Below, in pieces: positions 1,649 through 29,824 of a stretch of DNA of 64,000 nt. The notes under the pieces were generated by a model. It made no database searches. It was given only the letters and a program-made list of their open reading frames with translations, and had not been told where the DNA came from. The stretch comes from Anaeramoeba ignava BMAN (Eukaryota; Protista; Anaeramoebae): assembly GCA_028826165.1 (NCBI GenBank), contig JAPDFW010000065.1, forward strand, positions 372,001 through 436,000. Reading direction: 5' to 3'. Position 1 is the stretch's first letter, and every line of letters begins with the position of its first letter. The position numbers and the translations under genes were made by a program.

Positions 1649-3488
1649 TTAAATGAAATAAGTTTCAATTTCATCAACTGTCCATTCATTATTAGAACCA
1701 GCTAAATAACTTTGATCTGCATTTGAATTTGGTTCAATTCCTTTAGGATTAGTATATTTGTAACCACAACTTGTTACAAAAGGTGAAAAATCAGAATTTA
1801 ACCAAATTCCTCCACTTCTTCCAAAACATGGACCTCTATCTAAACTATAATAAATTGCAAATTGTTCTTGTCCTTGTTTGATTGGAAATTTCTCTGGTTT
1901 TCTATTTCCTTTATTATTTCTTAATGAAAAGAGGAATGCATTTGAATCCTGTATATCTCCCCGAACTTTCTTTCTATCTTCATTTCTCCATTTTGATTTA
2001 TCAGTTGTAAATCCAACTTGAGTAAATCCTCCAAAAATATAATTTTCTTTTGTTTTGATAATAATTAATGTTTTTCCTTTATTATCACAAATTGAATGCC
2101 ATTTATTACAATCAAATCCATCTTTTTTTGTTGAAAATCCTTTTTTCATTTTAGAAAAAAATTCATTATCATTTATCCATTCTTTTAATTTCTTAAGATA
2201 TTCAATATCTTTGATAATTTCTGAATCTGAAAAAATATTCAATAATTTCTTTTCATTTTGATTTGATTTCTTAATTGATAATTTAAGATTTTGTATTTCC
2301 TTATCTTTTTGTTTGAGAATATTATCTTTCTTCTCATTTTCTGATTTTAGATTTTGAATATCTTTTTGTTTTTTCACATTTTCTAATTTTAAATTTTGAT
2401 TTTCTTTTATTGAATTCTCAATTTCCTTTGCTTTTTTTTCATTTTCTAATTTTAGATTTTGAATATTTTTCTTTATTATCAATTTCCTCTTTTTGGATTT
2501 GATTTTCTGATTCAAATGATTTGATTTTTTTTATCTTCTTTTTAATTTTCTTTTCATTTTCTTTAATTTTTGTTTGATTTTCTTGATCTTGAATTTGAAA
2601 AATAGTTTTTTGAATATCAACTAAAAAAGATTTAGGAAGAAAAAAATCAAATTGTTTTAATTTATAAAAATCTTGTTTTGGAATTGAATCTTTATCAAAT
2701 AATGAAAAAAAAGAATGAAATAATCTTTTCTTTTCAATTTCTTTTTCTTTCTTTCCTTTTAATCTTTGATTTCTTTTTTCAATCCAATTATTTAAAAATT
2801 GAAAAAAATCAAATTGAAAAATTTCTTTTTTTTCTTGTTTAAATTGAATAAATTTGATAATTTCTTCTTTAGTTAAATTGAATAAATTCTCATTATTCTG
2901 AATTTGGGAAAAATTTTGATTTATTAATTCAAAACATTTTATTTCAATTTCATTTGAATTCAAATTTCGATTTTGGAATAAAAATAGGAAAAAATTTGAA
3001 TAATTAATTGAATTTAAAATTTTTTTTTGAATAAATTCTTTCAATAAATTTAATTTAAAATAAATTGAAATTTCCAATAATTGAATAAGATTTTCTTGAT
3101 TCTCAAAAGAAATATTTCCATAATAAATATAACTCAAAATTGATTCCATTTCTTTTTTATTAAATTGATTTAAAGAAATAGAAAGAGATTCTTGCCTTAA
3201 AAACTTATTAAAAAAAGGAGATCTTGAAGATAAAATTGATTTATGAACTTTAATTTCAAAAGGATTTGATTTATTCTCAACAAAAATTGAAAAATCTTTA
3301 AATGAATTTTCTTTTAAAAGGTTTGAATAATCTTCAATTAAATTTTTTGTTACTTTTTTTTCTAAATTTTTCATTTCATTTGCATTTTCATTTTGATTTG
3401 CATTTTCAATTTGATTTTCATTTTCATTTTGATTTTCAATTTGATTTTCATTTTCAATTTGGTTATTATTATTATTATTATTATCCAT
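1649..3488 (-). CDS. BTB-coiled coil-TLDc protein (BTB type A, TLDc type alpha); one frameshift near 2465
   Basis: ORF 2439-3488 has BTB (DFSIFV..VHKSILSSRSPFF); ORF 1649-2515 has TLDc (WHSICDNKGKTLIIIKT..IFGGFT..AFLFSL..GPCFG..VDEIETY); join in an A-run restored by comparison with paralogue 20311. Confidence 0.85.
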
Positions 3489-3658
3489 TTTGTTTTTTGT
3501 TTTTGTTTTTTGTTTTTTGTTTTTTTGTTGTTTATTAAAAAAAAAGGAAAAAAATGAATTTTTTAATTTTCCGAATTTTTATTTAATTTTTTTATTTTAA
3601 TTTAAATTTAAATCTTTTTTCCTTTTTAGATTTTTTTGTTTTTGCTTTTTTTTTTAAA

Positions 3659-5452
3659 TTAAATGAAATAAGTTTCAATTTCATCAACTGTCCAATCTGA
3701 ATAAGAACCAGCTAAATAACTTTTTGCTTCATTTGTATCATGTTTTAATCCATTTGGAAGTTTATATGTTGCTCCAAAATCTGTATGTCCTTTATGTAAA
3801 TCACTCGAAATAAGAATATCAGTACAATATTGATTTCTATGATCACCAAATCTTGGACCATTACTTGAAACGTAACGAATTGCATAATCTTCACGATTTT
3901 CTTGAATTTCAAATTTTTGAGGTAAATCATTTTTTGGATTTTTTAAACTGAAAATAAATGCATTTGAATCTTTAATATATCGATTTGAACCTGATTTAAA
4001 TCCAACTTGAGTAAATCCTCCAAAAATATAATTATCTGTTGTTTTGATAATAATTAATGTTTTTCCTTTATTATCACAAATTGAATGCCATTTATTTCCT
4101 GTAAATCCATCTTTTTTTGCTGAAAATCCTTTTTTCATTTTAGAAAAAAATTCATTATCATTTATCCATTCTTGTAATTTTAGAACATATTCAATTTCTT
4201 GAATTATTGAATCTGGAAACATATTCAATAATTTCTTTTCATTTTGATTTGATTTCTCAATTGATAATTTAAGATTTTGTATTTCTTCATCTTTTTGTTT
4301 GAGAATATTATCTTTCTTCTCATTTTCTGATTTTAGATTTTGAATATCTTTTTTTTGTTTCTCAATTTCTTGTTTTTGTTTTTGATTTTCAGATTTGAAA
4401 GATGAAATTTTTTTGTCTCTTCTTTGGATCTTCTTGTCTCTCCTTTGAATTTTCTTTTCTTGTTTCTTATTTGCCCGAATCATTTTTTTTGGGATTTTCT
4501 TTTCTTTATTATCAATTTCTTCTTTTTGGATTTGATTTTCTTTTTGATTATCTTGAATAACTTTGTTTTGAATATCAACTAAAAAAGAATTGGGAAGAAA
4601 AAAATCAAATTGTTTTAATTTATAAAAATCTTGTTTTGGAATTGAATCTTTATCAAATAATGAAAAAAAAGAATGAAATAATCTTTTCTTTTCTTTTTCT
4701 TTTTCTTTCTTTCCTTTTAATCTTTCATTTCTTTTTTCAATCCAATTATTTAAAAATTGAAAAAAATCAAATTGAAAAATTTCTTTTTTTTCTTGTTTAA
4801 ATTGAATAAATTTGATAATTTCTTCTTTAGTTAAATTGAATAAGTTCTCATTATTCTGAATTTGGGAAAAATTTTGATTTATTAATTCAAAACATTTTAT
4901 TTCAATTTCATTTGAATTTAAATTTCGATTTTGGAATAAAAATTGGAAAAAATTTGAATAATTAATTGAATTTAAAATTTTTTTTTGAATAAATTCTTTC
5001 AATAAATTTAATTTAAAATAAATTGAAATTTCTAATAATTGGATAAGATTTTCTTGATTCTCAAAAGAAATATTTCCATAATAAATATAACTCAAAATTG
5101 ATTCCATTTCTTTTTTATTAAATTGATTTAAAAAAATTTTATCAATCTCATTTCGTTCTTTTAAAAACTTATTAAAAAAAGGAGATCTCGAAGATAAAAT
5201 TGATTTATGAACTTTAATTTCAAAAGGATTTGATTTATTCTCAACAAAAATTGAAAAATCTTTAAATGAATTTTCTTTTAAAAGGTTTGAATAATCTTTA
5301 ATTAAATTTTTTGTTACTTTTTTTTCTAAATTTTTCATTTCATTTTCATTTTCATTTTGATTTGCATTTTCAATTTGATTTTCATTTTGATTTTCAATTT
5401 GATTTTGATTTTGATTTGCATTTTCAATTTGGTTATTATTATTATTATCCAT
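3659..5452 (-). CDS. BTB-coiled coil-TLDc protein (BTB A, TLDc beta), intact 597 aa
   Basis: Single ORF with BTB, K/E/Q-rich coiled coil and TLDc motifs. Confidence 0.92.
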   Translation of the reverse strand: MDNNNNNQIENANQNQNQIENQNENQIENANQNENENEMKNLEKKVTKNLIKDYSNLLKENSFKDFSIFVENKSNPFEIKVHKSILSSRSPFFNKFLKERNEIDKIFLNQFNKKEMESILSYIYYGNISFENQENLIQLLEISIYFKLNLLKEFIQKKILNSINYSNFFQFLFQNRNLNSNEIEIKCFELINQNFSQIQNNENLFNLTKEEIIKFIQFKQEKKEIFQFDFFQFLNNWIEKRNERLKGKKEKEKEKKRLFHSFFSLFDKDSIPKQDFYKLKQFDFFLPNSFLVDIQNKVIQDNQKENQIQKEEIDNKEKKIPKKMIRANKKQEKKIQRRDKKIQRRDKKISSFKSENQKQKQEIEKQKKDIQNLKSENEKKDNILKQKDEEIQNLKLSIEKSNQNEKKLLNMFPDSIIQEIEYVLKLQEWINDNEFFSKMKKGFSAKKDGFTGNKWHSICDNKGKTLIIIKTTDNYIFGGFTQVGFKSGSNRYIKDSNAFIFSLKNPKNDLPQKFEIQENREDYAIRYVSSNGPRFGDHRNQYCTDILISSDLHKGHTDFGATYKLPNGLKHDTNEAKSYLAGSYSDWTVDEIETYFI

Positions 5453-5557
5453 TTTGTTTTTTGTTTTTGTTTTTTGTGTTTTTGTTTTTTAAAAAAAAAG
5501 GAAAAAAAATGAAAAAAATGAAAAATTTTAAATTCATTTTTTTTTTGTTGTTTAAAA
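5453..5557. promoter_or_regulatory. 105-bp bidirectional promoter with TTCATTTT initiator-like motifs on each strand
   Basis: AAAATGAA at ~5505-5522 (minus gene) and TTCATTTT at ~5533 (plus gene). Confidence 0.55.
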
Positions 5558-7641
5558 ATGGAACAAGATTTAAAACAAAAATTTATTAATCATTCTCAAC
5601 AACATCTTTTTGATTTTTTTAATGAATTAAATGAAGAAGAAAAAAAAAATTTTATTTCTCAATTAAAACAAATTGATTTTGAAGAAATAGATCGGATTTT
5701 TGAAACTTTTTCAGAAAATACACAAAGTAAATTTAATCAGAAAAGTTTTTACATTTGGAAAAAAAAAAGAAATTAAAAAAAATATATAAAAAAAAAATGG
5801 TAAATTTGACTTGAAAAAAATTTTAATTGAAAATTTTTTTTTTGATTAAATTTTTATTAAAAGAAAATATTCAATCACTTCAAAATCTTTTGGAACCAAT
5901 TCCAAATATTGAGAAAGTTTCAACTATGAGTTTAAAAAGACAACAAGATTTATTTGATTTGGGTTTAAAAGCTATTCAAAAAGGTGAAGTTTGTTGTATT
6001 GCTCTTGCTGGTGGTCAAGTAAATCAACATTAAAATGAACTTAGAAATTAAAATTATAATTAAATTTGAATTTGAATTTGAAATTAAATTTAAAATTCAT
6101 TTTGAAATTAAAATTAAAATTAAAATTCATTTTGAAATTAAAATTAAAATTAAAATTCATTTTGAAATTAAAATTAAAATTAAAATTCATTTTGAAATTA
6201 AAATTAAAATCAAAAATTAAAATTGAAATTAAAATTAAAATTAAAATTCATTTTGAAATTAAAATTAAAAAATTGAAATTAAAATTAAAATTAAAATTAA
6301 AATTAAAATTAAAATTAAAATTAAAATTAAAATTAAAATTAAAATTAAAATTAAAATTGAAATTAAAATTCATTTTGAAATTAAAATTAAAATTGAAATT
6401 AAAATTAAAATTAAAATTCATTTATAAAATTCATTTTGAAATTAAAATTAAAATTCATTTATAAAATTCATTTATAAAATTCATTTATAAAATTCATTTA
6501 TAAAATTCATTTATAAAATTCATTTTGAAATTAAAAGGGAACAAGACTCGGATTTGATCACCCAAAAGGAACATTAAATATCGAAATGCCATCACAAAAA
6601 AGTTTATTTGAAATGCAAGCAGAACAACTTTTAAAACTACAATCAATGGCGAAAAAAGAAGAAGCAAAAACACCAACAATTCCATGGTACATTTTAACAA
6701 GCGATTCAACACACGAAGAAACAGTGAAATTTTTTGAAGAAAATTCCCATTTCGGAATTGGAAAGGAAAACATCACATTTTTCGAACAAGGAAAACTACC
6801 AGGATTTAATTCATTAGAAGAGAAAAAAATAATATTAACAAACAAAGGAGAAATATCATTTTCACCCAACGGAAATGGGGGTATTTATAAAGCAATCAAA
6901 GACTCAGGAGTTCTTGAAAAAATGTCAAGAAAAAACATCAAATATATTCATGTTTATTCGGTTGATAATTGCCTTATCAAAATGGCAGATCCTGTTTTCA
7001 CAGGTTATTGTATTGAGGAAAAAGCAGAATGTGGAGCAAAAGTGGTCGCCAAACTTCATGCAAATGAACGTGTTGGAGTTCTTTGCAACAAAGAAGAACA
7101 TGTTCATGTTATTGAATATTCAGAAATTGGCAAGGAAAAATCTGAAATGAAGGATAAAAATGGCGATTTACTATTTAATTCTGCAAATATTTGCAACCAT
7201 TTATTCACGTTTGATTTTCTTAAGAAAATTTGTCTTGATTACTACTCAAAAATGCCTTATCATAAGGTTCAACGAATGGTTAATGGATTGAAAGACGGAA
7301 TTATTCAGCCATTTATTGCAATTAAATTTGAACAGTTTATTTTTGATGTTTTTCCGTTTGCAAAAAGTTTTGCTGTTTTGCAAGTTGAAAGAGAAAATGA
7401 ATTTTCCCCAATTAAAAACAAAACTGGAAATGATTCAATCGAAACTGCAAAAATTGCCATCTCCTCTTTGAATACAAAATTGGTTCAACAAGCTGGTGGT
7501 TTTATCGACTCTTCAAATTCAAATTTATTCGAGATTTCTCCTCTTGTTTCTTATAATGGAGAAAATTTACAAAATTTTGTTAAAGGAAAAACGTTCAAAC
7601 TTCCTTTTTATTTAAATTTAGATGCAATTCAACAAAATTAA
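5558..7641 (+). CDS. UAP1: UDP-N-acetylglucosamine pyrophosphorylase; exons 5558-5726, 5864-6018, 6538-7641
   Basis: Spliced LAGGQ|GTRLG..PKG, SPNGNGG, SVDN, EYSE, KFEQFIFDVF, EFSPIKN; both introns GTAAAT..AAAG and phase-compatible. Confidence 0.95.
6035..6530. repeat. (TAAAAT)n / TTCATTTATAAAA microsatellite filling UAP1 intron 2
   Basis: Direct inspection. Confidence 0.9.
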
Positions 7642-7779
7642 TTCTAAAAAAAAAAAGTGGAACAAAATTGAACAAAATTAAACTAAATTCATTCTTTTTT
7701 TTTCTTTAAAATTTTTTTTTTTCTCATTTCATAAATTTTCATTTTTTTTCTTTTTTCTTTTTTAATTAAAATAATCGAA

Positions 7780-9444
7780 ATGGATCCTATAATTCAAAAA
7801 CTCCAATCAAATGATTCAAATTTTATTAAATCAATTTTTATTCTTTCTCAAGTTAATCAAGAAAAAATCAACTTAATTTCACTTTCTTTAAAAAATAATC
7901 AAGTTCTAAAAGACTTGACAATACAAGAAATTAGCGTTAAATATTTCCATTTCATTTCAAAAGCTGTTGAAAAAAACAAATCAATAAAAAAACTCAATAT
8001 TTCACACAATAATTTTGGAGAAAAAGGCGCAAATGATATCAAAAAAATCATAGAAAATAACAAAGAAATTATTGAACTAAATATTGGATTCAATTCATTT
8101 GAAACAAAATCAATTGAAATTATTTGTGAAGGATTAAAACAAAATTCGACTTTGAAGAAAATCGATTTTTCTTACAATTCAATTGATGATGAAGGAATCA
8201 AATGCATTTCAGAAACGCTGAAAATCAACCAAAATTTAACATCAATAAATCTTAAAGGAAATTCAATGAAGGAAATGGGATTGAAATATTTATCTGAATG
8301 TTTGTGCTTGAATTCAACTCTGACTGAGTTGGATATTTCATATAATAAAACTGAAGGGAATTTTTTGGCAGATTTCCTCGATTCTCTTTCGCAGAATTCT
8401 GTTTTGCAAAGACTGAATATTGGATCAAATCAAATTCATCCAAAAGAAGGAAAAATAATTGGAGAAAAATTAATCAATATTAAATCACTTACTCATCTCG
8501 ATATCTCCAAAAATGAGATTGAAGACATTGCAATTGTTTCCATATCGGAATCTTTGCAAAAAACCCGCAATATAACACACTTGAATATTGCAAACACATC
8601 ATACACTCAAATGGGATTGGATCATCTTATTCAAATGCTGAAGAAAAATTTATTTATCCAAAATATTCAATTGACCCAAAGTGATCCATATGTGAAATAT
8701 AAGCTCTCAATAAATAAGCAATTCAACGACCCCTTTATTCAAGACATGGCAAGACTGTTTGAAAGAAGAGAACTCTGTGATATTGAGATCACAACCAAAA
8801 CAGGTTGCATCTCAGTTCACAAGAGTATTATGCTCTCCAGAATCGGAGAACATTGTCTCAAAAGATTGTCGCTAATATCCTATAAATACCCCAAAAATGA
8901 AGTTTACAATCTTCTTTTCTGGATATATACAGGCTTTGTTCCTGATGAGTCTTTAGTTCAATCTTTTTCTGACATTCTAAACGAGATTGAATATCAAGTT
9001 TCCAAATTTGAAAAAAAATCAAAAAAAAATGGATTAAAAAAAGATTTCAAAAAATTATATAAAAATTTCATCCCAAATGATTTTTCTATCGTTTTGGAAA
9101 CAGGAAAAGAGATCAAATGCCACAAATCGATTCTGATTGCAAGGAGCGACTTGTTTAGAGGAATGCTCATTAACGTAATTGATCCCTCAAATAAAGTTCA
9201 TGAATATCGGAATTCTTCTTTTTCTTCTATCAAATCTATTATTAAATATTTTTATTTGGATAAACTTAAACATGATATTTCTTTTCAGGCTCGAAAGGAA
9301 TTGGATGATGCTGCTGAATTCTATCAAATGTATTCAGATCTCAATTTTAATAAACTTTTGAAAAAATTTGATTTAAAAAATTTATCAAAAAAAAAGCAAA
9401 ATCGAAAAAATCTAAAAAGGAAAAAAGATTTAAAATTAAATTAA
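7780..9444 (+). CDS. Ribonuclease-inhibitor-type LRR protein with two C-terminal BTB domains
   Basis: 28-aa LxxLxLxxNxI repeats, then DIEI..VHKSIMLSR and DFSI..CHKSILIARSDLF BTB motifs. Confidence 0.88.
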   Translation: MDPIIQKLQSNDSNFIKSIFILSQVNQEKINLISLSLKNNQVLKDLTIQEISVKYFHFISKAVEKNKSIKKLNISHNNFGEKGANDIKKIIENNKEIIELNIGFNSFETKSIEIICEGLKQNSTLKKIDFSYNSIDDEGIKCISETLKINQNLTSINLKGNSMKEMGLKYLSECLCLNSTLTELDISYNKTEGNFLADFLDSLSQNSVLQRLNIGSNQIHPKEGKIIGEKLINIKSLTHLDISKNEIEDIAIVSISESLQKTRNITHLNIANTSYTQMGLDHLIQMLKKNLFIQNIQLTQSDPYVKYKLSINKQFNDPFIQDMARLFERRELCDIEITTKTGCISVHKSIMLSRIGEHCLKRLSLISYKYPKNEVYNLLFWIYTGFVPDESLVQSFSDILNEIEYQVSKFEKKSKKNGLKKDFKKLYKNFIPNDFSIVLETGKEIKCHKSILIARSDLFRGMLINVIDPSNKVHEYRNSSFSSIKSIIKYFYLDKLKHDISFQARKELDDAAEFYQMYSDLNFNKLLKKFDLKNLSKKKQNRKNLKRKKDLKLN

Positions 9445-9578
9445 ATATAAAAATTAAATAAAAATTCGGAAAATTAAAAAATTCATTTTTTTCCTTTTTT
9501 TTTAATAAACAAAAACACAAAACAAAAAACAAAAAACAAAAACACAAAACAAAAAACAAAACAAAAACACAAAACAAA

Positions 9579-11214
9579 ATGGATAATAATAATAATAACC
9601 AAATTGAAATTGAAAATGAAAACAAAATTGAAAATGAAAATGAAAATGATAAAATTTTTAATCAAAAATTACTTCAAGATTATCAAAAATTAATGCAAAA
9701 TAAAAATGAATCAGATTTTGTAATAAAAACAGGAAAAGATTCTTTTGAATTTTATTCTCATAAATTAATTTTAATTTCTCGTTCTCCTTATTTTTCTCTT
9801 CTTTTAAAAGAAAAAAATATAAATCAAATTTCATTTCCTCAATTTAAAAAAGAAAATATGGAACAAATTTTAAAATATATTTATTCAAGTCAAATTGAAA
9901 TTAAAAAAGAAAATTTAATTGATTTATTAATAATTTCAAATAAATTCCAATTAAATTTACTTTATAATTATATTGAAAATCAAATTATTAAAATTATTAA
10001 TGAAGAAAATGTTTTTAATATTTTATTATCAAATCGAAAAATTAAATCAATAAAATTAGAAAAAGAATGTTTTAATTTTATTAATAATAATCTTTCTAAA
10101 ATAAATCAAATAAAAATTAATCAAATATTAAATCAAAAACAAATTAAAATATTAATTAATCAAATAATTGAAAAACAAACAGAAATTGGAATTGAAATTT
10201 TTAATATTATTAATAATTTCCAAAATCAAATTCAAAATAAAAAAGAAAAAAAGAAAATTATTAAAGAATTTGAAAAAATAATTCTAAATAAAAACATCAA
10301 AAAAGAAGATTTAAACAAAATCCAAAAATTATCATTTCATTCAAAATTATTTCTTACTTTTATTCAAAACCAAGAAATTGATCAAAAAAACAAAGAAATT
10401 GATCAAAAAAAACAAAGAAAATCAAGAACAAAAACAAGAAAATGAAAAACAAAAGCAAGAAATTAATCAAAAAAATAAAGAAAATCAAGAACAAAAACAA
10501 GAAAATGAAAAACAAAAGCAAGAAATTAATCAAAAAAATCAAGAAATTAATCAAATCAAACTAATTTATGAAGAAATGAAATCAATTTACGAAGAAAATA
10601 AATCAATTTATGAAGAAATGAAATCAAAATATGAAGAAAAGTTACAAAAAGCATTTTCAGATTCAGAAATTATCAAAGAAATTGAAATGATGAAGAAATT
10701 AAAAGAATGGATAAATGATGAATTCTTTTATAAAATGAAAAAAGGATTTTCAACAAAAAAAGATGGATTTACAGGAAATCAATGGCATTCAATTTGTGAT
10801 AATAAAGGAAAAACATTAATTATTATCAAAACAACAGATAATTATATTTTTGGAGGATTTACTCAAGTTGGATTTATTTCAGGTTCAGATCGATATATTA
10901 AAGATTCAAATGCATTTATTTTCAGTTTAAAAAATCCAAAAAATAATTTACCTCAAAAATTTGAAATTCAAGAAAATCGTGAAGATTATGCAATTAATTA
11001 TGATTCAAGTTATGGTCCAAGATTTGGTGATTATCATGGTCAATATAATACTGATATTCTTATTCAGAGTGATTTACATAAAGGAAGAACAGATTTTGGA
11101 GCAACATATAAACTTCCAAATGGATTAAAACATAAAACAGATGAAGCAAAAAGTTATTTAGCTGGTTCTTATTCAGATTGGAAAGTTGATGAACTTGAAA
11201 CTTATTTTATTTAA
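9579..11214 (+). CDS. BTB-coiled coil-TLDc protein (BTB B, TLDc beta); +1 frameshift in an A-run near 10410
   Basis: ORFs 9579-10445 (BTB: SDFVI..SHKLILISRSPYF) and 10378-11214 (TLDc); 8 A versus 7 A in the adjacent repeat copy. Confidence 0.87.
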
Positions 11215-11413
11215 TTTAAAAAAAAAAAGCAAAAACAAAGATGAGTAATTAAAAAGAAAAAATTATTAAAAATTATTAAAGATGATTTTTTTTTATTTTT
11301 TTTTATTTTTTAATTAATTATGCCCCCAAACCATTTTTCATTTTGTGGGCAAATTCAAAAAATTTAAATAAAAATTTAAATAAATAAAAAAAAAAAAATA
11401 AAAATAAAAACAA

Positions 11414-14400
11414 ATGGAAGATGATTTATTTTCTTCAATTTATGTTTTAGAACATGCTTGTGTTTATGAATTACATGAAGTTGTTTCTTTTATTTCAAAT
11501 CGTTATCCAGAATTAGAAACAATGATTTTTTTTCAAGAAGAAACAAAACAACTTCTTACTCTTTATAATTTATTACTTGTTAATAAAAGAGAAGATTTTG
11601 AAAAATTTAAAAATAAATTAAATTTTATTAAAAATCAAAATACAAAAGCTTTTATTCAAGAACAAGTAATATATTTTAATTCTCAATATAATTTAAAAAC
11701 AAATTTATAACTCAATTTAAATAATTTAAATTTAAAATTATTTATAAAAATTTGAATAAAAAATTTAAATCAAAATAAAAAAAGAATAAAACATATTATA
11801 TTTAATATTAAGTAATATATTTTAATTCCCAATATAATTTAAAAACAAATTTATAATTTAATTAAATAATTTATATTTAAAAATTATTTATAAAAATTTG
11901 AATAAAATTTAAATAAAAATAAAAAGAATAAAACATATTATATTTAATTTAAATAATATATTTTAATTCCTAATATAATTTAAAAACAAATTTATAATTT
12001 AATTAAATAATTTATATTAAAAATTATTTATAAAAATTTGGATAAAATTTAATTAAAAATAAAAAGAATAAAACATATTATATTTAATATTAAATAATAT
12101 ATTTTAATTCCCAATATAATTTAAAAACAAATTTATAACTTAATTTAATAATTTAAATTTAAAATTATTTATATAAAATTTAAATAAAAATTAAATATAA
12201 ATAAAAAAAAGAATAAAACCTATTATATTTAATACTAAATAATATATTTTAATTCCTAATATAATTTTAAAACAAATTTATAACTCAATTAAATAATTTA
12301 AATTTAAAATTATTATTATAAATTTAAATAAAAAATTATAATTAAAAATAAAAAGAATAAAACATATTATATTTAATATTAAATAATATATTTTAATTCC
12401 CAATATAATTTAAAAACAAATATATAACTTAATTTAAATAATTTATATTTAAAATTATTATTAAAAATTTGGATAAAAATTTAAATAAAAAAATAAAAAG
12501 AATAAAACATATTATATTTAATATTAAGTAATATATTTTAATTCCCAATATAATTTTAAAACAAATTTATAACTCAATTAAATAATTTAAATTCAAAATT
12601 ATTTATAAAAATTTAAATAAAATTTTAATTAAAATAAAAAGAATAAAACATATTATATTTAATATTAAATAATATATTTTAATTCCAAATATAATTTAAA
12701 AACAAATTTATAATTTAATTAAATAATTTATATTTAAAAATTATTATTAAAAATTTGAATAAAATTTAAATAAAAATAAAAAAAGAATAAAACATATTAT
12801 ATTTAATATTAAATAATATATTTTAATTCCCAATATAATTTCCAAAACAAATCTATAACTCAATTAAATAATTTATATTTAAAATTATTATTAAAAATTT
12901 GAATAAAAATTAAATATAAAATAAAAAAAAGAATAAAACCTATTATATTTAATATTAAGTAATATATTTTAATTCCTAATATAATTTGAAAACAAATTTA
13001 TAATTTAATTAAATAATTTATATTTAAAAATTATTTATAAAAATTTAAATAAAAATAAATATAAATAAAAAAAGAATAAAACATATTATATTTAATATTA
13101 AATAATATATTTTAATTCCCAATATAATTTTAAAAACAAATTTATAACTCAATTAAATAATTTAATTTTAAAATTATTATTATAAATTTGAATAACAATT
13201 AAATTAAAAATAAAAAGAATAAAACATATTATATTTAATATTAAATAATATATTTTAATTCCCAATATAATTTTTAAAACAAATTTATAACTCAATTAAA
13301 TAATTTATATTTAAAATTATTATTAAAAATTTGAATAAAAATTAAATATAAATAAAAAGAATAAAACCTATTATATTTAATATTAAGTAATATATTTTAA
13401 TTCCCAATATAATTTCCAAAACAAATCTATAATTCAATTAAATAATTTATATTTAAAATTATTTATAAAAATTTGAATAATAATTTAAATAAAAATAAAA
13501 AGAATAAAACCTATTATAATTTAATATTAAATAATATATTTTAATTCCTAATATAATTTCCGAAAACAAATTTATAATTTAATTAAATAATTTATATTTA
13601 AAATTATTTATAAAAATTTAAATAAAAATTTTATTTAAAATGAAAAAGATAAATTATATAAACGATCCAGAAAAATGGGAAATATGATTAATATATATTT
13701 TTGAAAACAAATATAATTAATTAAATATTTTAGAATATAATTCAAGTTAAAAATTTTTGAATTTGGTTCATCAAATTGTTAAAAGAATAAAACATAAGAA
13801 ACAAATTTTCGAAATGATTTTTTTCTTCAATAATTTAAAAAACAAATTTAGAAATAAATTTTAAATTTTTATTAAGTTTAAAAATTTAATTTTCAAAATT
13901 TTATAAAAATGAAGAAAATTTTAAATGATATATAAAATCCAGAAAAATGGGAAATATGATTATCAACATAGAACAAATAAAATTCAAAAATTGTAATTAA
14001 TTTCTTTTTAATATTTCATTTTTAGTTTTTAAGAAATTAAAATAATTTTTCAATTAAATTTTTAGAACAAAACAAAAAAGGAAATAACTTTAAATAGTTT
14101 ATTAAGTTTATCCAATTTTCAAAATAGAAATTAAAATGAATTTATAAATTAAAATTAATTTATAAAATTGAAATTAAAATTTCTTTTTAATTTTCGGATA
14201 AAAGTTTTAAAATTAAAAATAATTTTTCAAATTAAATTTTTAGAAACAAAACAGAAAAAGGAAAATGAATCTCTTCTTCTTAATCCCAATCTTAAAATTA
14301 AAATTAAAATTAAAATTAAAATTAAAAATTAAAATTAAAATTAAAATTAAAAATTAAAATTAAAATTAAAATTATAATTAAAATTCATTTATAAAATAAA

Positions 14401-15737
14401 ATTAAAATTAAAATTAAAATTAAAATTATAATTAAAATCAAAATTAAAATCAAATTTAAAATTAAAATCAATATTTAAATTAAAATTAAAATTAAAATCG
14501 GATAAAAATTAAATTTAAAATTAATATTGAAATTAAAATCAAAATTAAAATCAAAATTAAAATTAAAATCAATATTTAAATTAAAATTAAAATTAAAATC
14601 GGATAAAAATTAAATTTAAAATTAAAATCAAAATCGGATAAAAATTAAAATTAATATTAAAATTAAAAGATGATGAATATCTTCCATTCCCAGTTTCATT
14701 CGAAAAATCAATCCAATTCAGAAAAGAAATTACTCAAAAATTAATCGAAAATACAAGATACTTAAGAAGTTTACAAGAACAAACATCAGTCTACACACAA
14801 CAAATCCAATTCAAAAATCAAGAAGACAAAAAAAATAAAATGGAAAATCAATACGAAAAAATAAACGGAAAATTTGATGAAACAAATAAAGAAAACGAAA
14901 AAACAAAAGAAAAAGGCTCCAAATCGAAAAAAAATAAACAAAACACAAACACGAAAAAAAAAGAAACAAACGATAACCGAAAAAAGGGGAAAACAAAAGC
15001 CAAAACAAAAAAAAAACCGAATGCAAAAAACAAAAAACCACCAAATTCAACAAAAAGAAAGAAAAATCAGACACAAACAAAGCCAAAAGGAGAAGAAAAC
15101 ATATCAATCACGAGGAGGAACATGGTCGATGGAAGAAACATATCAGCTTATCGAGGGGGTAAGAAGGTATGGAGTTGGAAGATGGTCTTTGGTTCGGGAT
15201 GATCCAAAAATTCGGATCGGATCTCATCGAACAAACCACGATTTATGTAATAAATGGCGAAACCTAACATCAAGAAGCCACGATGAAGATTTCAAGAAAT
15301 TTATCACAGAAGCAATCAACCAGAAGCATCCTGTTGTTTACCATGGAAATGACAGCGCTGAGATTACAGACGATGATATTGAAAAAAAATCCGATTTTTT
15401 GGATTCTTCTTTTGATAATCAAGATATTAAAAGAACAAAAAAATCCAATAAGAAAAATCCCCAAAATAAAATAGATCTTCCAAATGAGATTTTTGAGAGG
15501 CAAATTGAAGCTTTGGAACAACAACAAAATGAAAATTTGGTTGAGCAAAATTTTGTTATCAATCAAAATTCACGTCAATTTGAAAAGGATTTAATTCAAA
15601 AAAATCAAGATCAAAAGAATAATCAAAAATTAGCAGTTGATGTTGTATTTGAAAAAGAGAATGATTCACAATCAAATTTTGCAGAAAATTTTGAGAAGAA
15701 AGAAGAAGAAGAAGAAGAAAAAGAGAAAATGAATTAA
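11414..15737 (+). CDS. Telobox/TRF-like Myb-domain protein; exon 11414-11665 tentatively linked, last exon ~14670-15737 with one frameshift
   Basis: WSMEETYQLIEGVRRYGVGRW..RTNHDLCNKWRNL is a telobox Myb; donor GTAATA at 11666, acceptor AAAG at ~14669; middle exons (13900-14300) unresolved. Confidence 0.6.
11666..13648. repeat. Minisatellite B, ~143-bp unit, ~14 copies, starting at a 5' splice site
   Basis: Anchor GAATAAAAC at 11784, 11926, 12066, 12211, 12355, 12500, 12641, 12785, 12931, 13074, 13217, 13359, 13502. Confidence 0.92.
14292..14668. repeat. (TAAAAT/CAAAAT)n intronic microsatellite
   Basis: Direct inspection; ends at AAAG acceptor. Confidence 0.85.
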
Positions 15738-15882
15738 TTTGTTTTTTTTGTTTTTTTTTTTGAATTGAATTAAAAAATTAAAAATAAAAAAAAGTGGAAC
15801 AAAATTTAATTTAAATTTAGATTTTTAATTTAAATTTTTTGCTTTTTTTTATTTGCTTTGGAAATTGTTATAAAAAAAAATA

Positions 15883-18360
15883 TTAATTATCTAATCGATA
15901 AAAACATATTGATTGATCATCAGAAACGGAAACTAATTGTTGACCAAGAGGATCAAAACAAATATCACAAACTTGATCTTTATGAGAATCAAAAAAATGC
16001 AAGTTTTCAAAATTGCGAATATCCCAAACTTTAACAGATTTATCACTTGAACCTGTAGCAAAAATTGGAGCAGAAGGATGGAAAGCAGAAGTGAGGACCC
16101 AAGACTTGTGTGCGGAGATTGTGTTAATAGGAGTATCAGAATGGTGATAATCAAAGAGCCTAACTTGACCATCTTCAGAAGTTGTTAATAATAAAAGTGA
16201 ATCTTGAGAGAAACATAGCGAGCGTATCCCCATTGCATGAGCCTCAAATTTAGCAAAATACTCGCCAGTCTCCACATCGAAAATCGTCACAATTCCGTTC
16301 TCTGCTCCGCATCCTATTAGCTTTCCGTTTGGACTGAATTTTGCTGATAAAAGAAATTTTGCATCGCTGTCAAGTGTTCGCATTAATTTATTTGTTTGTG
16401 TCCCGAATAGATCTAGTTTCCCGTTATCCCGTCCGCATAATAATACTTCATCCCCTCCGTTAATGTCAAGCATCCATGGCTGATATGAATTCTCAAGCTC
16501 AATAATCGTTGGTGTTGTGTTGTTTTTTAAATCCCATTTTCGAAGTGTTCCATCAAATGAACTTGAAAAAATATCTTTTTATAAATAATTTTATATTTTA
16601 TAAATAATTTTATAAATAATTTTATATTTTATAAATAATTTTATAAATAATTTTATAAATAATTTTATAAATAATTTTATAATTAATTTTATAAATAATT
16701 TTATAAATAATTTTATAAATAATTTTATAATTAATTTTATAAATAATTTTATAAATAATTTAATAAATAATTTTATAAATAATTTTATAAATAATTTTAT
16801 AATTAATTTTATAAATAATTTTATATTTTATAAATAATTTAATAAATAATTTTATAAATAATTTTATAAATAATTTTATTAATAATTTTATAAATAATTT
16901 TTTAATTTTATATTTAATTTAATAAATAATTTTATAAATAATTTTATATTTAATTTTATAAATAATTTTATAAATAATTTTATATTTAATTTTATAAATA
17001 ATTTTATAAATAATTTTATAAATAATTTTATAAATAATTTTATAAATAATTTTATAAATAATTTTATAAATAATTTTATATTTATAATTTAATAAATAAT
17101 TTTATAAATAATTTTATAAATAATTTTATAATTAATTTTATAAATAATTTTATAATTAATTTTATAAATAATTTTATAAATAATTTTATAAATAATTTTA
17201 TAAATAATTTTATATTTAATTTTATAAATAATTTTATAAATAATTTTATAAATAATTTTATAAATAATTTTATATTTAATTTTATATTTAATTTTATAAA
17301 TAATTTTATTAATAATTTTATAAATAATTTTATTAATAATTTTATAAATAATTTTATAAATAATTTTATAAATAATTTTATAAATAATTTTATAAATAAT
17401 TTTATAAATAATTTTATAAATAATTTTATAAATAATTTTATAAATAATTTTATAAATAATTTTATAAATAATTTTATAAATAATTTTATAAATAATTTTA
17501 TAAATAATTTTATAAATAATTTTATAAATAATTTTATAAATAATTTTATAAATAATTTTATAAATAATTTTATAAATAATTTTATAAATAATTTTATAAA
17601 TAATTTTATAAATAATTTTATAAATAATTTTATAAATAATTTTATATTTAATTTTATAATTAATTTTATAAATAATTTTATAAATAATTTTATATTTAAT
17701 TTTATAAATAATTTTATAAATAATTTTATAAATAATTTTATAAATAATTTTATAAATAATTTTATAAATAATTTTATAATTAATTTTATATTTAATTTTA
17801 TAAATAATTTTATATTTAATTTTATAATTAATTTTATAATTAATTTTATATTTAATTTTATAAATAATTGTTTTAAATTTTGTTTTAAATTTTATAAATA
17901 ATTTTATAAATAATTTTATAAATAATTTTATAAATAATTTTATAAATAATTTAATAAATAATTTTATAAATAATTTTATAAATAATTTTTAAATTGTTTT
18001 AAATTATTTTAATTTTAATTTTATAAATAATTTTATAAATAATTTAATAAATAATTTTATAAATAATTTTGTTTTAAATTTTGTTTTAAATTTTGTTTTA
18101 AATTTTGTTTTAAATTTTGTTTTAAATTTTGTTTTAAATATTATAAATATAAAGTACATTCTGCTTGTTTTGAAACTGCTAAAGAAATAACACCTAATTC
18201 ATGACCAGTTAAAGTATTTAAAGGACTATCTGATGTTGAACCATTCCAAGTTTTAATAGTAGAATCACAAGAACCTGTTAATAATAAATTATTTTCTGCC
18301 CATTTTACTGTCCAAATTCCATCATTATGTGCTTTTGTAATTGCTTTTAAGAACAGACAT
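15883..18360 (-). CDS. WDR61: WD40 protein WDR61/Ski8; exons 18360-18158 and 16574-15883
   Basis: Exon 1 AHNDGIWTVKW..TGSCDSTIKTW..GHELGVISLAV; intron GTACTT..AAAAG; SSSFDGTLRKWD, AHAMGIRSLCFS, AHKSWVL, VSVSDDQSI; one extra A just after the ATG. Confidence 0.85.
16578..18140. repeat. (TAATTTTATAAA)n 12-mer array filling the 1.58-kb WDR61 intron
   Basis: Direct inspection; essentially no G/C over ~1.3 kb. Confidence 0.95.
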
Positions 18361-18460
18361 AAAAAAATTGAAAATAAAAAAATGAAAAAAAAAATTTAAT
18401 TTTATTTTTTTAAAAATATTTTTTTCATTTTTTTTCCTTTTTCTCTTTTAATTTTTTAAA
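18361..18460. promoter_or_regulatory. 100-bp bidirectional promoter WDR61/ENY2 with back-to-back TTCATTTT
   Basis: AAAATGAA at ~18380 and TTCATTTT at ~18424. Confidence 0.55.
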
Positions 18461-18856
18461 ATGAATAGAAGAAAAAAAAATCCTCAAAAAAATAAAAAGA
18501 AAAATCCTCAAAATCAAAATCAAAAATTAATTCAAAATAATCAACAAATTTTTGATAAACAAATACAAGAAAAACCAGAAGAATTTTTTGATAAATTAAA
18601 ATTTCAATTTGAAAATTCAAAAGAAAAAAAAAATATTGAAGAAACGTTTAGAAAAAAATTAATTGAATCAAATTGGAAACAAAAAATGGAAACTTTTTGT
18701 AATGAATTAATTGAATCAAAAGGAATTTCAAATATTTCAAAAGAAAAAATTCTAAAAAAAATGATTTTTGAAGGTCAATTAAATGTTCCTTTAGAATTAA
18801 GAAATGAACTTGAATCATCAATTAGAAGTTTTCTTGAAACAATTCAAATGAATTAA
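18461..18856 (+). CDS. ENY2: Transcription and mRNA export factor ENY2/Sus1
   Basis: RKKLIESNWKQKMETFCNELIESKGISNIS..VPLELRNELESSIRSFL matches the EnY2 family pattern. Confidence 0.8.
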   Translation: MNRRKKNPQKNKKKNPQNQNQKLIQNNQQIFDKQIQEKPEEFFDKLKFQFENSKEKKNIEETFRKKLIESNWKQKMETFCNELIESKGISNISKEKILKKMIFEGQLNVPLELRNELESSIRSFLETIQMN

Positions 18857-18919
18857 TTATTTTTATTTTTGTTTTATTTTCTTTTTTTTTTGTATTCCAT
18901 TTTAATACAATTAAATAAA

Positions 18920-19880
18920 AAGAATGAAAATAGATTTAATTTAATATTTAATTTAATAATTGATTTAAAAATATAATTTAATATTTAATTTTATTATTAA
19001 AATAATAATTTAATGTTTTAGATTTAAATATTTTATTATTTAAATATTTAACATATAAATATAAAAAATAAGAATAGATTTAATTTAATATTTAATTTTA
19101 TGTTTAAAATAATAATTTAATGTTTTAGATTTAAATATTTTATTATTTAAATATTTAACATATAAATATAAAAAATGAGAATATATTTAATTTAATATTT
19201 AATTTATAAATTAATTTAAAAATATAATTTAATATTTAATTTTATTATTAAAATAATAATTTAATGTTTTAGATTTAAATATTTTATTATTTAAATATTT
19301 AACATATAAATATAAAAAAATAAGAATAGGTTTAATTTAATATTTAATTTATAAATTAATTTAAAAATATAATTTAATATTTAATTTTATTATTAAAATA
19401 ATAATTTAATGTTTTAGATTTAAATATTTTATTATTTAAAAATTTAAACATAAAAAATATAAAAAATAAGAATAGATTTAATTTAATATTTAATTTGTAA
19501 ATTAATTTAAAAATATAATTTAATATTTAATTTTATGTTTAAAATGATAATTTATTGTTTTTAAATTTAAATATTTTATTATTTAAATATTTAACATATA
19601 AATATAAAAAAATAAGAATAGATTTAATTTAATATTTAATTTATAAATTAATTTAAAAATATAATTTAATATTTAATTTTATTGTGTTAAAATAATAATT
19701 TAATGTTTTAGATTTAAATATTTTATTATTTAAATATTTAACATAAAAATATAAAAAATAAGAATAGATTTAATTTAATATTCAATTTATAAATTAATTT
19801 AAAAATATAATTTAATATTTAATTTTATTATTAAAATAATAATTTATTGTTTTAGATTTAAATATTTTATTATTTAAAAA
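18920..19880. repeat. Minisatellite C, ~145-bp unit, ~7 copies
   Basis: Anchor TAGATTTAATTT at 18931, 19075, (19182 deleted copy), 19327, 19473, 19619, 19765. Confidence 0.9.
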
Positions 19881-20310
19881 TATTTTGAAAATTGATTTTT
19901 TTGAAATTAAAATTTTATCTTTTTTTTTGAATTAAATTGAATTAATATTAATTTGGAAATTTGTTTTTAAAATTTAAATTTATTAATAATTTTTAAATTC
20001 CAAAAAAAAAAAATTAAATTAAAAATTAAATTAAAATAATTTTCCTTTTTTTTTAATAAAAAAAATTAATAAAAAATAATAATAATTTATTAATAAATTA
20101 ATTTAAAATAATAAATTAAAAAGAAAATTAAATTAATTATTAATTTAAATTTATTCTCATTTTTTATATTTTTATTTATTTTCAAAATCCACTTTTTTTA
20201 TTTAAATTTTTTTTTTAAATTTTTTTTTCATTTTTTTCCTTTTTTTTTTAAAAACAAAAAACAAAAAACAAAAAACAAACAAAAACACAAAAAACAAACA
20301 AAAACACAAA

Positions 20311-21992
20311 ATGGATAATGATAATAATAATAACCAAATTGAAAATGCAAATCAAATTCAAAATCAAAATGAAAATGAAATGAAAAATTTAGAAAAAAAA
20401 GTAACAAAAAATTTAATTAAAGATTATTCAAACCTTTTAATTGGAAATTCATTTAAAGATTTTTCAATTTTTGTTGAGAATGGATCAAATCCTTTTGAAA
20501 TTAAAGTTCATAAATCAATTTTATCTTCAAGATCTCCTTTTTTTGATAAGTTTTTAAGAGAACAAAATGAGATTGATAAAATTTTTTTAAATCAATTTAA
20601 TAAAAAAGAAATGGAATCAATTTTGAGTTATATTTATTATGGAAATATTCCTTTTGAGAATCAAGAAAATCTTATTCAATTATTGGAAATTTCAATTTAT
20701 TTTAAATTAAATTTATTGAAAGAAATTATTCAAAAAAAAATTTCAAATTCAATTAATTATTCAAATTTTTTCCAATTTTTATTCCAAAATCGAAATTTAA
20801 AATCAAATGAAATTGAAATAAAATGTTTTGAATTAATAAATCAAAATTTTTCCCAAATTCAGAATAATGAGAATTTATTCAATTTAACTAAAGAAGAAAT
20901 TATCAAATTTATTCAATTTAAACAAGAAAAAAAAGAAATTTTTCAATTTGATTTTTTTCAATTTTTAAATAATTGGATTGAAAAAAGAAATAAGAGATTA
21001 AAAGGAAAGAAAGAAAAAGAAATTGAAATTGAAAAGAAAAGATTATTTCATTCTTTTTTTTCATTATTTGATAAAGATTCAATTTCAAAACAAGATTTTG
21101 ATAAATTAAAAACAATTTGATATTTTTCTTCCAAATTCTTTTTTAATTGATATTCAAAAAACTATTTTTCAAATTCAAGATCAAGAAAATCAAACAAAAA
21201 TTAAAAGAAGAGATAAAAGAATCAAATCATTTCAATCTGAAAACCAAATCCAAAAAGAGGAAATTGATAATAAAGAAAAGAATATTCAAAATCTAAAATC
21301 AGAAAATGAGAAAAGAAAGATAATATTCTCAAACAAAAAGATGAAGAAATACAAAATCTTAAATTATCAATTGAGAAATCAAAACAAAATCAAAATAAAT
21401 TATTGAATATTTTTCAGATTCAATAATTATTCGAGATATTGAATATGTTAAGAAATTAAAAGAATGGATAAATGATGATGAATTTTTATAAAATGAAAAA
21501 AGGATTTTCAGTAAAAAAAGATGGATTTACAGGAAATAAATGGCATTCAATTTGTGATAATAAAGGAAAAACATTAGTTATTATCAAAACAAAAGAAAAT
21601 TATATTTTTGGAGGATTTACTCAAGTTGGATTTACAACTGATAAATCAAAATGGAAAGAAAAAGATATCAATAAAAGAAATGGGTTTATTCCAGATAAAA
21701 ATGCATTTCTCTTTTCATTAAGAAATGATAAAGGAGATAGAAAACCAGAGAAATTTCCAATTAAAAAGGAGAAGAACAAACAGCAATTTATTATGATTTA
21801 GATAGTGGTCCATGTTTTGGAAGAAGTGGAGGAATTTGGTTAAATTATGATTTTTCACCTTTTGTAACAAGTTGTGGTGAATTTTATACTAATCCTAAAG
21901 GAATTGAACCAAATTCAAATGAAGCTAAAAGTTATTTAGCTGGTTCTTATGATGAATGGAAAGTTGATGAAATTGAAACTTATTTCATTTAA
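20311..21992 (+). CDS. BTB-coiled coil-TLDc protein (BTB A, TLDc alpha); several frameshifts (error or pseudogene)
   Basis: Near-identical inverted paralogue of 1649-3488; indels near 21110, 21310, 21410, 21765; ends ETYFI-TAA at 21992. Confidence 0.75.
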
Positions 21993-22890
21993 AAATTATT
22001 TTTCATTTTTTCTTTCAAAATTCAATTCAATTTTAATTTACTTTAAATCAAATTAAATTATTCAAATTAATAAATAAAAAACAAATCCAATTTAAAAAAT
22101 TTAAATTTTAATTAAAAAATATTATTAAAAATATGATTAAATATGAAAAATTGTTTTTTGAAGATAATAAACCAAAATAAAAATTGAAAATAGAAATTAA
22201 TAATAATTAAATTTAAATTATTTATTATTAAATAAATTAATAAAGAATTCAATTAAAATTTATTATTAAAAATTTATTAAATCAAGAAATATTTAAAACA
22301 AAACAAAATTTTCCAATTTAAAAATTTATTTTCAATATATTTTATTATAATTAAAATTGAATAATAAATAATCAAAAATATTTTAAATAAAGAAATATTG
22401 ATAAAATATATATTTAATATTCTTTATTTAAATTTGAAATAAATTAATTAAAATATTTTATTAATTTTAAAATATTTAAATATTCTTTATTTAAATTTTG
22501 AAATAAATTAATTAAAATATTTTTTATCAATTTTATTTAAATTTTTGAAATAAATTTTAAATTATTTTAAATAAAGAAATATTATTTAAAATAAAAAAAT
22601 ATATAAAATAAAATTAATTTCCAATTTAAATATTTATTATTCTTTATTTAAATTTTGAAATAAATTAATTAAAATATTTTATTAATTTTATTAAATTTTT
22701 GGGAATAATTTTATATTATTTTAAATAAAGAAATATTAATAAAATATATAAAATAAAATTAATTTTATCAATTTTATTAAAATTAATTTTATATTATTTT
22801 AAATAAAGAAATATTGATAAAATATTTATTATTCTTTATTTAAATTTTTATTTTTCATTTTTTTCATTTTTTTTCATTTTTATTTTAAAA

Positions 22891-24354: not shown

Positions 24355-24866
24355 AAATTATTTTTCATTTTTTCTTTCAAAATTCAATTCAATTTTAATT
24401 TACTTTCAAATCAAATTAAATTATTCAAATTAATAAATAAAAAACAAATCCAATTTTAAAAATTAAATTTAAATTAAAAAATATTATTAAAAATATGATT
24501 AAATATGAAAAAATTGTTTTTTGAAGATAATAAACCAAAATAAAAATTGAAAATAGAAATTAATAATAATTAAATTTAAATTATTTATTATTAAATAAAT
24601 TAATAAAGAATTCAATTATAATTTATTATTAAAAATTCATTAAATCAAGAAATATTTAAAACAAAACAATTTTCCAATTTAAAAATTTATTTTCAATATA
24701 TTTTATTATAATTAAAATTGGAATAATAAATAATCAAAAATATTATTTCAATAAAATAAAATTAATTTTAATTTTAATTATTTAATATTCTTTATTTCAT
24801 TTTTGAAATGAACGCAAATTAAAAATTCAAATTGATTAAGAAAAAAAAGAAAGAAAAAAAAGAAAA

Positions 24867-25349
24867 TCATTTCAATTCAACATTTTCATTTTTTTGGATA
24901 GAATTACTATAAATGACTTCAAGAGAATGAAAAGTAATTTCATTAAAATTATCAATTTTCTGAACATTAAGAGGAGAAAATATTTTGATTTTGAGGATTA
25001 ATTCTTGCAAAAACTTTAACATAATCACCAGCTTGAACTTTTTGGAAAATTTTAACTCCAGAAAATAGTTTAATTTGAGTCATTCCAGTTCCATCATCAA
25101 GAACAAGAGTTGGTGTTGGTTCTTCATGGATTGATAAAATATGTGCTATAAAAAAAACTGGAATATTTACTTTCATATTTATTTCTTCATTTTGTTTCTT
25201 TTTATTGTTTCTTCTTTTATTTCTTCTTCTTTTATTTCTTCTTCTTTTATTTCTTTTATTTGTCTAATCATTATTGGTAAAAAAGTTTTTCTTTTGTTTG
25301 TTTTTTGTTGTTTTTGTTCTTCTGTTTTTATTGATGAAGTTTTTTCCAT
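24867..25349 (-). CDS. RPA2(RPA32)-like OB-fold protein, no winged-helix tail; two frameshifts
   Basis: FLPIMIRQI, LDDGTG, GDYVKVFA, and after a frameshift IDNFNEITFHSLEVIY, all typical of the RPA2 OB fold. Confidence 0.7.
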
Positions 25350-25444
25350 TTTTAATTTTGAATTTAAAAAATAAAAATGATTTAAAAAAAAATAATTAAA
25401 AAAAAAAATAAAAAAGGATTTTTTAACGTATTTTCTTTTTAAAA

Positions 25445-27096: not shown

Positions 27097-27250
27097 TTTT
27101 TTTGTTTATTAAAAAAGAAAAAAATGAATTTTTTAATTTTCCGAATTTTTATTTAATTTTTATTTTTAATTAGTTTTTTTAAAAATTGAATTAAATTTGA
27201 ATTGAAAAAAAAAGTTAAAATTAAAATTAAAATTTCAAATTTAAAATTAA

Positions 27251-28222: not shown

Positions 28223-28319
28223 TAAAAAACAAACTAAAAAAAAATTTAATTAAAAAAACAACAAAGAAAAAAAATGAAATTTTCTTTTTTTAAAAATTTT
28301 CAATTTAATTATTTTGCTT

Positions 28320-29797: not shown

Positions 29798-29824
29798 TGA
29801 AAAAAATTAACAAAAAAAATATTC

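Follow-up and report, generated by a model that had tools for sequence, protein, structure and literature searches.

What kind of evolution makes closely related copies of a gene differ from one another in one short segment, and there almost exclusively by the replacement of amino acids? This question is raised by a 64-kb stretch of the Anaeramoeba ignava assembly (42.8 Mb), positions 372001-436000 of contig C66, called here the window, which is extremely AT-rich (GC of 8-32% per 2 kb). A cluster of nine paralogous BTB-TLDc genes extends over positions 1649..37824 on both strands, and its members share the same layout, a BTB/POZ domain at the N-terminus and a TLDc domain at the C-terminus, joined by a coiled-coil linker that is rich in lysine and glutamine. 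Three of these genes, termed A, B and C, carry TLDc copies of the beta type, and the segment in question is a block of hypervariable codons within this domain. The answer developed below is that fixed positions of TLDc have been the target of recurrent diversifying (positive) selection, a conclusion in which we place high confidence; what the selected surface may be used for is discussed afterward, at lower strength.

The variable block in the three beta copies

Copy A (3659..5452, minus strand) is the only uninterrupted beta gene and encodes 597 amino acids that comprise BTB, coiled coil and TLDc. Copy B lies on the plus strand in two reading frames, with the BTB half and the start of the coiled-coil linker at 9579..10445 and the TLDc half in a second open reading frame at 10378-11214, whereas copy C (25445..27096, minus strand) has its BTB half at 26071-27096 and its TLDc half at 25445-26074. 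The TLDc domain of copy B (10693..11211, plus strand) consists of 173 codons, is recognized by the Pfam family PF07534 with E=1e-21, and provides the codon numbering used throughout. The same profile scores 74.4 bits in copy A and 78.1 bits in copy B, against a cut-off of 24.5.

The hypervariable block covers TLDc codons 100-153, that is, 10990..11151 on the plus strand in copy B, 3722..3883 on the minus strand in copy A and 25508..25669 on the minus strand in copy C, the last two being 87% identical to the B block in a DNA search of the organism's own genome. In the codon alignment, 14 of the 54 block codons differ in amino acid among the trio, compared with 13 of the 119 TLDc codons outside it (Fisher p=0.022). 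The residue pattern reported in the first-pass annotation was exactly reproduced by this alignment, including the seven sites at which each copy has a different residue (codons 102, 107, 114, 125, 132, 148 and 150) and the multi-base codon swaps CGT/AAT/CTT, TCG/CAG/TTT and CAT/AGA/CAA. The single synonymous change that it had claimed was also recovered, since only one codon of the block, codon 103 (TAC/TAT), is purely silent. Furthermore, contigs derived from the reads of the source sample match positions 10966-11118 without any difference, a check based on fragmented short-read contigs of one sample, the block having no coverage in the other (X5). The observation of a variable block is thereby confirmed as real.

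Hypervariability is not confined to the block, which is the largest of some five such segments in TLDc. All positions that follow refer to the plus strand of copy B. Immediately 5' of the block, codons 92-99 (10966..10989) include sites 92, 98 and 99, for which the ratio of nonsynonymous to synonymous rates (omega) is 2.4-5.7 in the family-wide analysis described below. A loop at codons 62-70 (10876..10902) contains sites 65, 66, 67, 68 and 70 with omega of 3-9 and has insertions in other subfamilies, while a minor segment at codons 27-30 (10771..10782) includes site 28 (omega 3.0, q=0.017). Finally, codons 160-161 (11170..11175) have omega values of 4.6 and 3.7. Elsewhere in the window, positions 24010-24065 are the counterpart of the loop at codons 62-70.

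The trio by itself does not suffice to establish selection. A three-taxon maximum likelihood (ML) codon model gave a block omega of 2.0 with MG94-F3x4 and 1.0 with GY94-F61, with likelihood ratio test (LRT) statistics against omega=1 of 2.6 and 0.0, respectively; this is not significantly above 1 and counts against a selective interpretation. Because the test is underpowered, with too few copies, the trio alone cannot carry the claim. The block does differ from the rest of TLDc (LRT 22-24), for which omega is 0.24-0.48, and when the trio was evaluated at 14 block sites defined only from sister pairs outside the beta type, omega rose to 5.3 under MG94 (LRT 12.7) and 2.7 under GY94 (LRT 4.7). 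A model-free comparison points the same way: fourfold degenerate third positions differ by 1.4% in the trio, and positions 1 and 2 differ by 23.7% in the selected codons and by 4.8% in the others. When B is compared with C, the BTB half and TLDc hardly differ in the proportion of synonymous differences (pS of 0.030 and 0.035, respectively), whereas that of nonsynonymous differences (pN) climbs from 0.031 in the BTB half to 0.065 over TLDc, with 0.147 for the block. For the trio itself, diversifying selection is therefore asserted with moderate confidence.

Selection at TLDc positions across the family

The family to which the trio belongs offers the replication that three copies cannot. At least 153 scored TLDc matches were found in the A. 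ignava genome, starting from 663 first-look candidates. With the intact gene A as the query, a word-index search returned 232 proteins at E<=1e-10; among the 120 matches listed, all are from A. ignava and bear automatic names only, such as 'pep-cterm sorting domain-containing', 'BTB domain-containing' or 'TLDc domain-containing'. For the analysis, 150 loci were fetched, and the 144 intact TLDc reading frames extracted from them entered the codon alignment.

Many pairs of copies located on different contigs have pS of 0.01-0.04 and yet pN of 0.07-0.13. In 32 non-overlapping close pairs, the nonsynonymous differences stack in the same alignment columns, and the silent ones are near zero throughout. 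Circularity was avoided by defining site classes on one data set and estimating omega on another. Thus, the sites that vary in the trio were evaluated in 31 close pairs outside the beta type, where omega is 3.49 with MG94 and 1.87 with GY94-F61 (LRT 130 and 29, respectively); the corresponding values for the whole block are 2.38 and 1.31.

The sharpest resolution comes from sister pairs, which are true sister leaves of the ML tree so that their paths cannot overlap. A per-site LRT over 26 such pairs identified omega>1 at q<0.05 for 26 of the 173 sites, namely 28, 49, 65-68, 70, 92, 98, 99, 102, 104, 107, 110, 113, 115, 119, 120, 123, 125, 132, 137, 147, 148, 160 and 161, the strongest of which individually reach omega of 7-13. 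Fourteen of the 26 fall inside the block (hypergeometric p=0.008), and nine of the 14 block sites that vary in the trio are also selected family-wide. Six null simulations, run with omega=1 or with a mixture of values <=1, produced zero sites at q<0.05. The absence of any family site with dN/dS>1, named in the first-pass annotation as the outcome that would speak against its proposal, is accordingly not what the sister pairs reveal. Its claim of strong diversifying selection is supported at specific sites, mainly by the family replication and not by the block of the trio taken alone; the ligand-binding face that it proposed is putative.

The same result was obtained when only intact genes were considered. 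In 16 sister pairs in which both genes are open-frame, the 14 block sites that vary in the trio have omega of 4.51 (MG94) and 2.80 (GY94), with LRT values of 90 and 37; with sites trained on the other nine pairs, the estimates are 3.95 and 2.19, and the remaining sites are at 0.23-0.65. The model-free comparison was repeated for the sister pairs, in which fourfold third positions differ by 3.0%, and positions 1 and 2 differ by 31.5% in the selected codons versus 3.6% in the others. The effective number of residues is 7.9 per selected site against 2.4 elsewhere, with Y, W, R, H, N and D prominent at the selected sites.

An observation made on the same alignment concerns the tempo of duplication. 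Forty of the 144 TLDc copies, at 40 separate loci on many contigs (falling within loci L021-L135), form one single-linkage cluster at pS<0.05, with a median pS of 0.065 and a median pN of 0.111. By these distances the cluster looks like a recent, dispersed amplification burst.

Alternatives to diversifying selection

Could the variable sites be merely unconstrained, with omega near 1, and the silent divergence be undercounted because third positions are biased toward A and T? These positions are indeed 91% A/T (A 0.40, T 0.51, C 0.04, G 0.06), and selection or strong mutation bias may act on them. Simple counting is unsafe for this reason and because the NG86 pN/pS is about 1 even in the conserved BTB half; in addition, GY94-F61 yields omega values roughly half those of MG94 and a block-level value of about 1. 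However, both ML models, which correct for composition, retain omega of 1.9-2.8 (GY94) or 3.5-4.5 (MG94) at independently defined sites (LRT 29-130), the single sites at 7-13 lie far from neutrality, and at positions 1 and 2 of the selected codons differences are ten times as frequent as at fourfold sites. Moreover, against distant paralogues 15-29% of the codons for identical residues differ silently (14.6% overall and 28.8% in the block), so that silent change is visible, and its concealment by codon bias is ruled out by this calibration. A lack of constraint is thus an improbable explanation, although the silent rate remains the main quantitative uncertainty, the effect of which is bracketed by the two codon models. 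Another possibility is that B and C are decaying pseudogenes in which the excess of amino acid changes is neutral drift. Both copies have a one-base frame break in the linker at an A-run. In B, the frame changes at a run of eight A (10405..10412, plus strand), where the repeat unit before it has only seven, and this break is kept in the read-derived contigs, one of which, from run X1, covers 10373-10437 and agrees at every base without gaps; in C, a single-base break occurs near the A5 run at 26287-26291 (minus strand). According to our reading of open-frame lengths, roughly one third of the family matches genome-wide also sit in short open frames. Against decay, the changes are concentrated, with the block departing from the remainder of TLDc as described above, and the TLDc frames of A, B and C are all open despite the very high frequency of stop codons in this genome. 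Above all, the same sites show omega of 2.8-4.5 in the 16 sister pairs whose genes are both open frames (413-669 amino acids), which rules out pseudogene relaxation at the family level, and an omega significantly above 1 is not attainable by neutral drift. The probability left to this explanation is accordingly minimal.

The third process that could mimic selection is non-allelic gene conversion, either by homogenizing the flanks around an old block or by importing short tracts from paralogues, a form of templated diversification. Exchange does occur in the cluster, since copy A is chimeric, its BTB half being of the alpha type and its TLDc of the beta type, and similarity within the trio is lost some 25 nt 3' of the stop codon (11215-11240 in B, with equivalent positions in A and C). 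Also, in the comparison of the beta copies with the C13 cluster (L004-L007, L144 and L149), pS is 0.07-0.17 in the block versus about 0.30 in the rest of the domain, which hints that the 3' half of TLDc may have been exchanged between the two clusters at an older date. An old block should nevertheless be rich in silent differences, and among trio codons for identical residues the silent difference is 1.6-1.8% in the block and 1.6-1.8% outside it; the block is therefore not older than its surroundings. Tracts from distant paralogues, for their part, would import the 15-29% silent difference cited above. The search for donors leads to the same answer, as private words of 18-21 nt have next to no donors among the sampled paralogues. 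About 110 21-mers are private to each copy, and only 0, 3 and 0 of them recur in the remaining fetched paralogues or elsewhere in the window; the three matches are to the nearest outgroup, the C13 cluster, which is what the retention of ancestral states would predict. A genome-wide DNA search found only the three beta copies matching the block at >=87%, with the C13 cluster next at 75-81%. Finally, sites with three states cannot arise by exchange among three copies alone, and shuffling inside the young subfamily still needs the variants to originate within an equally short silent-site time. Conversion from diverged paralogues is ruled out by the equal silent divergence inside and outside the block together with the k-mer and genome searches for donors, and gene conversion in any form is considered very unlikely to account for the pattern.

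Two yardsticks were discarded in the course of this comparison. The raw NG86 pN/pS is biased upward in an AT-rich genome and was kept for descriptive use only, and the 3' flank could not serve as a neutral reference, because the homology of the trio stops so soon after the coding sequence.

Other features of the cluster concern exchange and frame integrity more generally. The crossover in copy A is located at about 4100-4150, between TLDc codons 13 and 27, and its BTB and coiled-coil half has a pN of 0.03 relative to the alpha genes at 2439-3488 and 20311-21120; entire domains are exchanged within the cluster. The homogeneous unit among the beta copies is essentially the coding sequence only. 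The remaining six paralogues are found at 1649-3488 (minus), 20311-21989 (plus, broken), 22891-24354 (plus), 29825-31181 (minus), 34142-35806 (minus) and 36331-37824 (minus). Other members also change frame in the A-rich stretch that links BTB to TLDc, at 2439-2515 and 30334-30354, both on the minus strand. The frame-broken members may be dead genes or may be rescued by slippage at the A-runs.

A TLDc fold joined to BTB

An AlphaFold2 model built from the family alignment has a mean predicted local-distance score (pLDDT) of 95.4 and a predicted template-modeling score (pTM) of 0.91. The 16 best Foldseek matches of this model comprise only TLDc structures (lowest E 1.7e-9, TM score 0.60-0.75, identity 15-21%), and the solved structures among the matches include NCOA7 (8AR6), OXR2 (4ACJ), mEAK-7 (7U8O), Skywalker (6R82) and Oxr1 (7FDE). 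In the model, the block consists of a strand (101-103), a long loop (104-121), two further strands (122-124 and 130-133) and a loop that precedes a helix (150-153). The long loop is the least confident part, with a mean pLDDT of 77. In two pairs of selected sites, 102/104 and 123/125, the residues are two positions apart (i, i+2), as they would be on one face of a strand.

The canonical relatives of this domain bind V-ATPase (PMC9263379, PMC8608904), which introduces a different account of the selected sites: the family would have retained V-ATPase binding, and its contact face would be engaged in an arms race with effectors of symbionts or pathogens that are directed at the proton pump or imitate TLDc proteins. 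Of the solved TLDc entries that were matched, all those in a complex have V-ATPase as the partner (mEAK-7, NCOA7B, Oxr1 and Rtc5p), and TLDc has been described as a V-ATPase-interacting module (PMC8608904). The cryo-EM study of mEAK-7 names the TLDc residues that contact the pump (PMC9263379). In a HMMER alignment to mEAK-7, which is weak (E of about 0.01) and covers the N-terminal half only, contacts P316/Q317 fall on the selected codons 66/67 and G276/H277 on the conserved G25/F26, adjoining the selected site 28. These coincidences hint at an overlap between the variable surface and the face by which TLDc usually binds its partners, which at this strength of alignment is only a lead. The biological context would also be suitable, since bacteria housed in symbiosomes of Anaeramoeba and a Legionellales symbiont in A. 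pumila are reported in a preprint (bioRxiv 10.64898/2026.04.11.717937). On the other side, a single conserved partner creates no obvious need for more than 150 diversified binders, and the fusion to BTB suggests recruitment of a ligase rather than regulation of a pump. The subunits of V-ATPase are highly conserved. Overall, an arms race at the pump is regarded as unlikely.

The other half of these proteins suggests a function in ubiquitin ligation. The BTB profile PF00651 scores 51.5 bits in copy A and 67.8-80 bits in two other paralogues scanned, and among the four proteins scanned only the paralogue at 22891-24354 has a Pfam match to BACK. A CUL3 orthologue is present in the genome, for the open reading frame at 1759-3195 of locus L153 is most similar to human CUL3 (E=4e-119, versus 2e-101 for CUL4), and its N-terminal docking region is encoded in separate upstream exons. 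This gene is split (C58:18893-23947): some 2.5 kb separate the part matching profile positions 1-100 from the next piece downstream, and stops lie between the pieces. Long introns could be the cause, or an intein, as inteins have been reported in Anaeramoeba (PNAS 2023, PMC10710043). Other cullins were also detected, L154 being CUL2/1-like and L151, L152 and L156 being intact CUL4-like open reading frames. The multiplicity of the latter is unusual, as these three intact frames and the split L155 (with a 421-amino acid N-terminal frame) all have their best match to human CUL4A/B.

The evolutionary side of the picture is shown by the data. After recent duplication, about 26 set positions of TLDc accumulate amino acid changes several times faster than silent sites change, and the hydrophobic scaffold and the BTB half are kept by purifying selection. 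On this basis a mechanism can be proposed. The selected positions would form a putative target-contacting surface, and BTB would recruit the TLDc-bound target to a Cullin-3 ligase, so that the family would constitute a germline-encoded repertoire of variable substrate adaptors, the possible targets of which are proteins of prey, pathogens or bacterial symbionts. Taken jointly, the selection claim and the reading of the family as an adaptor repertoire are judged fairly probable. That the BTB-TLDc proteins act specifically as Cullin-3 substrate adaptors is plausible but somewhat doubtful. Still more tentatively, the family could be a germline-encoded repertoire of variable intracellular receptors, in which a TLDc surface overlapping the face that canonical members present to V-ATPase would have been turned into a variable, paratope-like surface, rich in Y/W/R/H/N/D, that recognizes many different foreign or symbiont proteins and passes them to Cullin-3; this is possible, if on balance doubtful.

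Several observations weigh against the adaptor interpretation or the selection claim beneath it, in addition to the modest outcome of the trio test. Omega is model-dependent, with GY94-F61 values about half those of MG94, and recombination among paralogues could still skew individual pair distances, though the sister pairs are mutually independent. By secondary structure, 16 of the selected sites are in coil, seven in strands and three at helix ends, so that the enrichment in coil is mild. No Pfam match to BACK or a 3-box was found in copy A or in the TLDc half of copy B, although a short 3-box may escape Pfam. Because B and C are frame-broken, two of the three genes in which the block was found may not make a full-length protein, and no RNA run was found.

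The closest parallel to the adaptor interpretation is provided by the MATH-BTB and F-box substrate adaptors, which Thomas, in Genome Research in 2006, reportedly described as adaptively evolving. As in these nematode and plant families, a ubiquitin-ligase adaptor architecture has undergone a lineage-specific, tandemly clustered expansion, with a conserved docking domain (BTB) and positive selection at a few positions of the presumed substrate-binding domain; in A. ignava too, omega>1 is concentrated at specific sites outside a conserved BTB. The differences are that the variable domain is TLDc and not MATH or FTH/FBA, that Cullin-3 docking is putative here, and that the family occurs in an amoeba, a free-living anaerobic metamonad. 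The B30.2 (PRY-SPRY) domain of TRIM5alpha and the finTRIMs is another case in which variable loops, positive selection, an E3-related fusion and family expansion occur together. In both, the recognition domain is a beta-sandwich that carries the hypervariable segments and is attached to an E3-related module, whereas the fold is another one, RING stands in place of BTB/cullin, and the A. ignava family is not known to have an antiviral or other function. Among TLDc proteins, expansions are known from the endosymbiont hosts Tetrahymena utriculariae and Paramecium bursaria, with 22-30 members that are partly tandem duplicates (PMC11834939). Like A. ignava, these are protists that house endosymbionts and have expanded their TLDc genes; however, the ciliate genes are reported to evolve mainly under purifying selection (in T. 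utriculariae, FEL found 84 of 236 codons negative and two positive) and have been read as protection from oxidative stress (PMC11834939). The A. ignava family differs in having at least 153 copies, fused to BTB, and, with 26 of 173 sites at omega>1, its paralogues do not follow that predominantly purifying pattern.

The prevailing view of TLDc is that of a conserved V-ATPase-binding domain related to oxidative stress and present in few copies per genome. The canonical OXR1, NCOA7, mEAK-7 (TLDC1) and TBC1D24 resemble the A. ignava domain in fold (TM about 0.7) and in matching the Pfam TLDc family, but share only about 15-21% identity with it, and they are conserved and few per genome; no canonical TLDc protein is known to be hypervariable or fused to BTB. 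The use of TLDc as the variable end of an adaptor, with hundreds of copies, two dozen diversifying positions and a conserved BTB, is not described in the literature searched, in which no report linking Anaeramoeba to TLDc or BTB was found either. The selected positions provide a map for binding experiments and may mark which face of TLDc is generally suited to protein binding. If the adaptor interpretation is true, a new fold would join the evolvable recognition modules of eukaryotes, alongside the leucine-rich repeat (LRR), MATH, FBA and SPRY, and a large putative recognition system would be indicated in an amoeba whose cells contain bacterial symbionts. If the receptor reading is also true, this would be a system of innate immunity or symbiont management of a kind undescribed for TLDc proteins.

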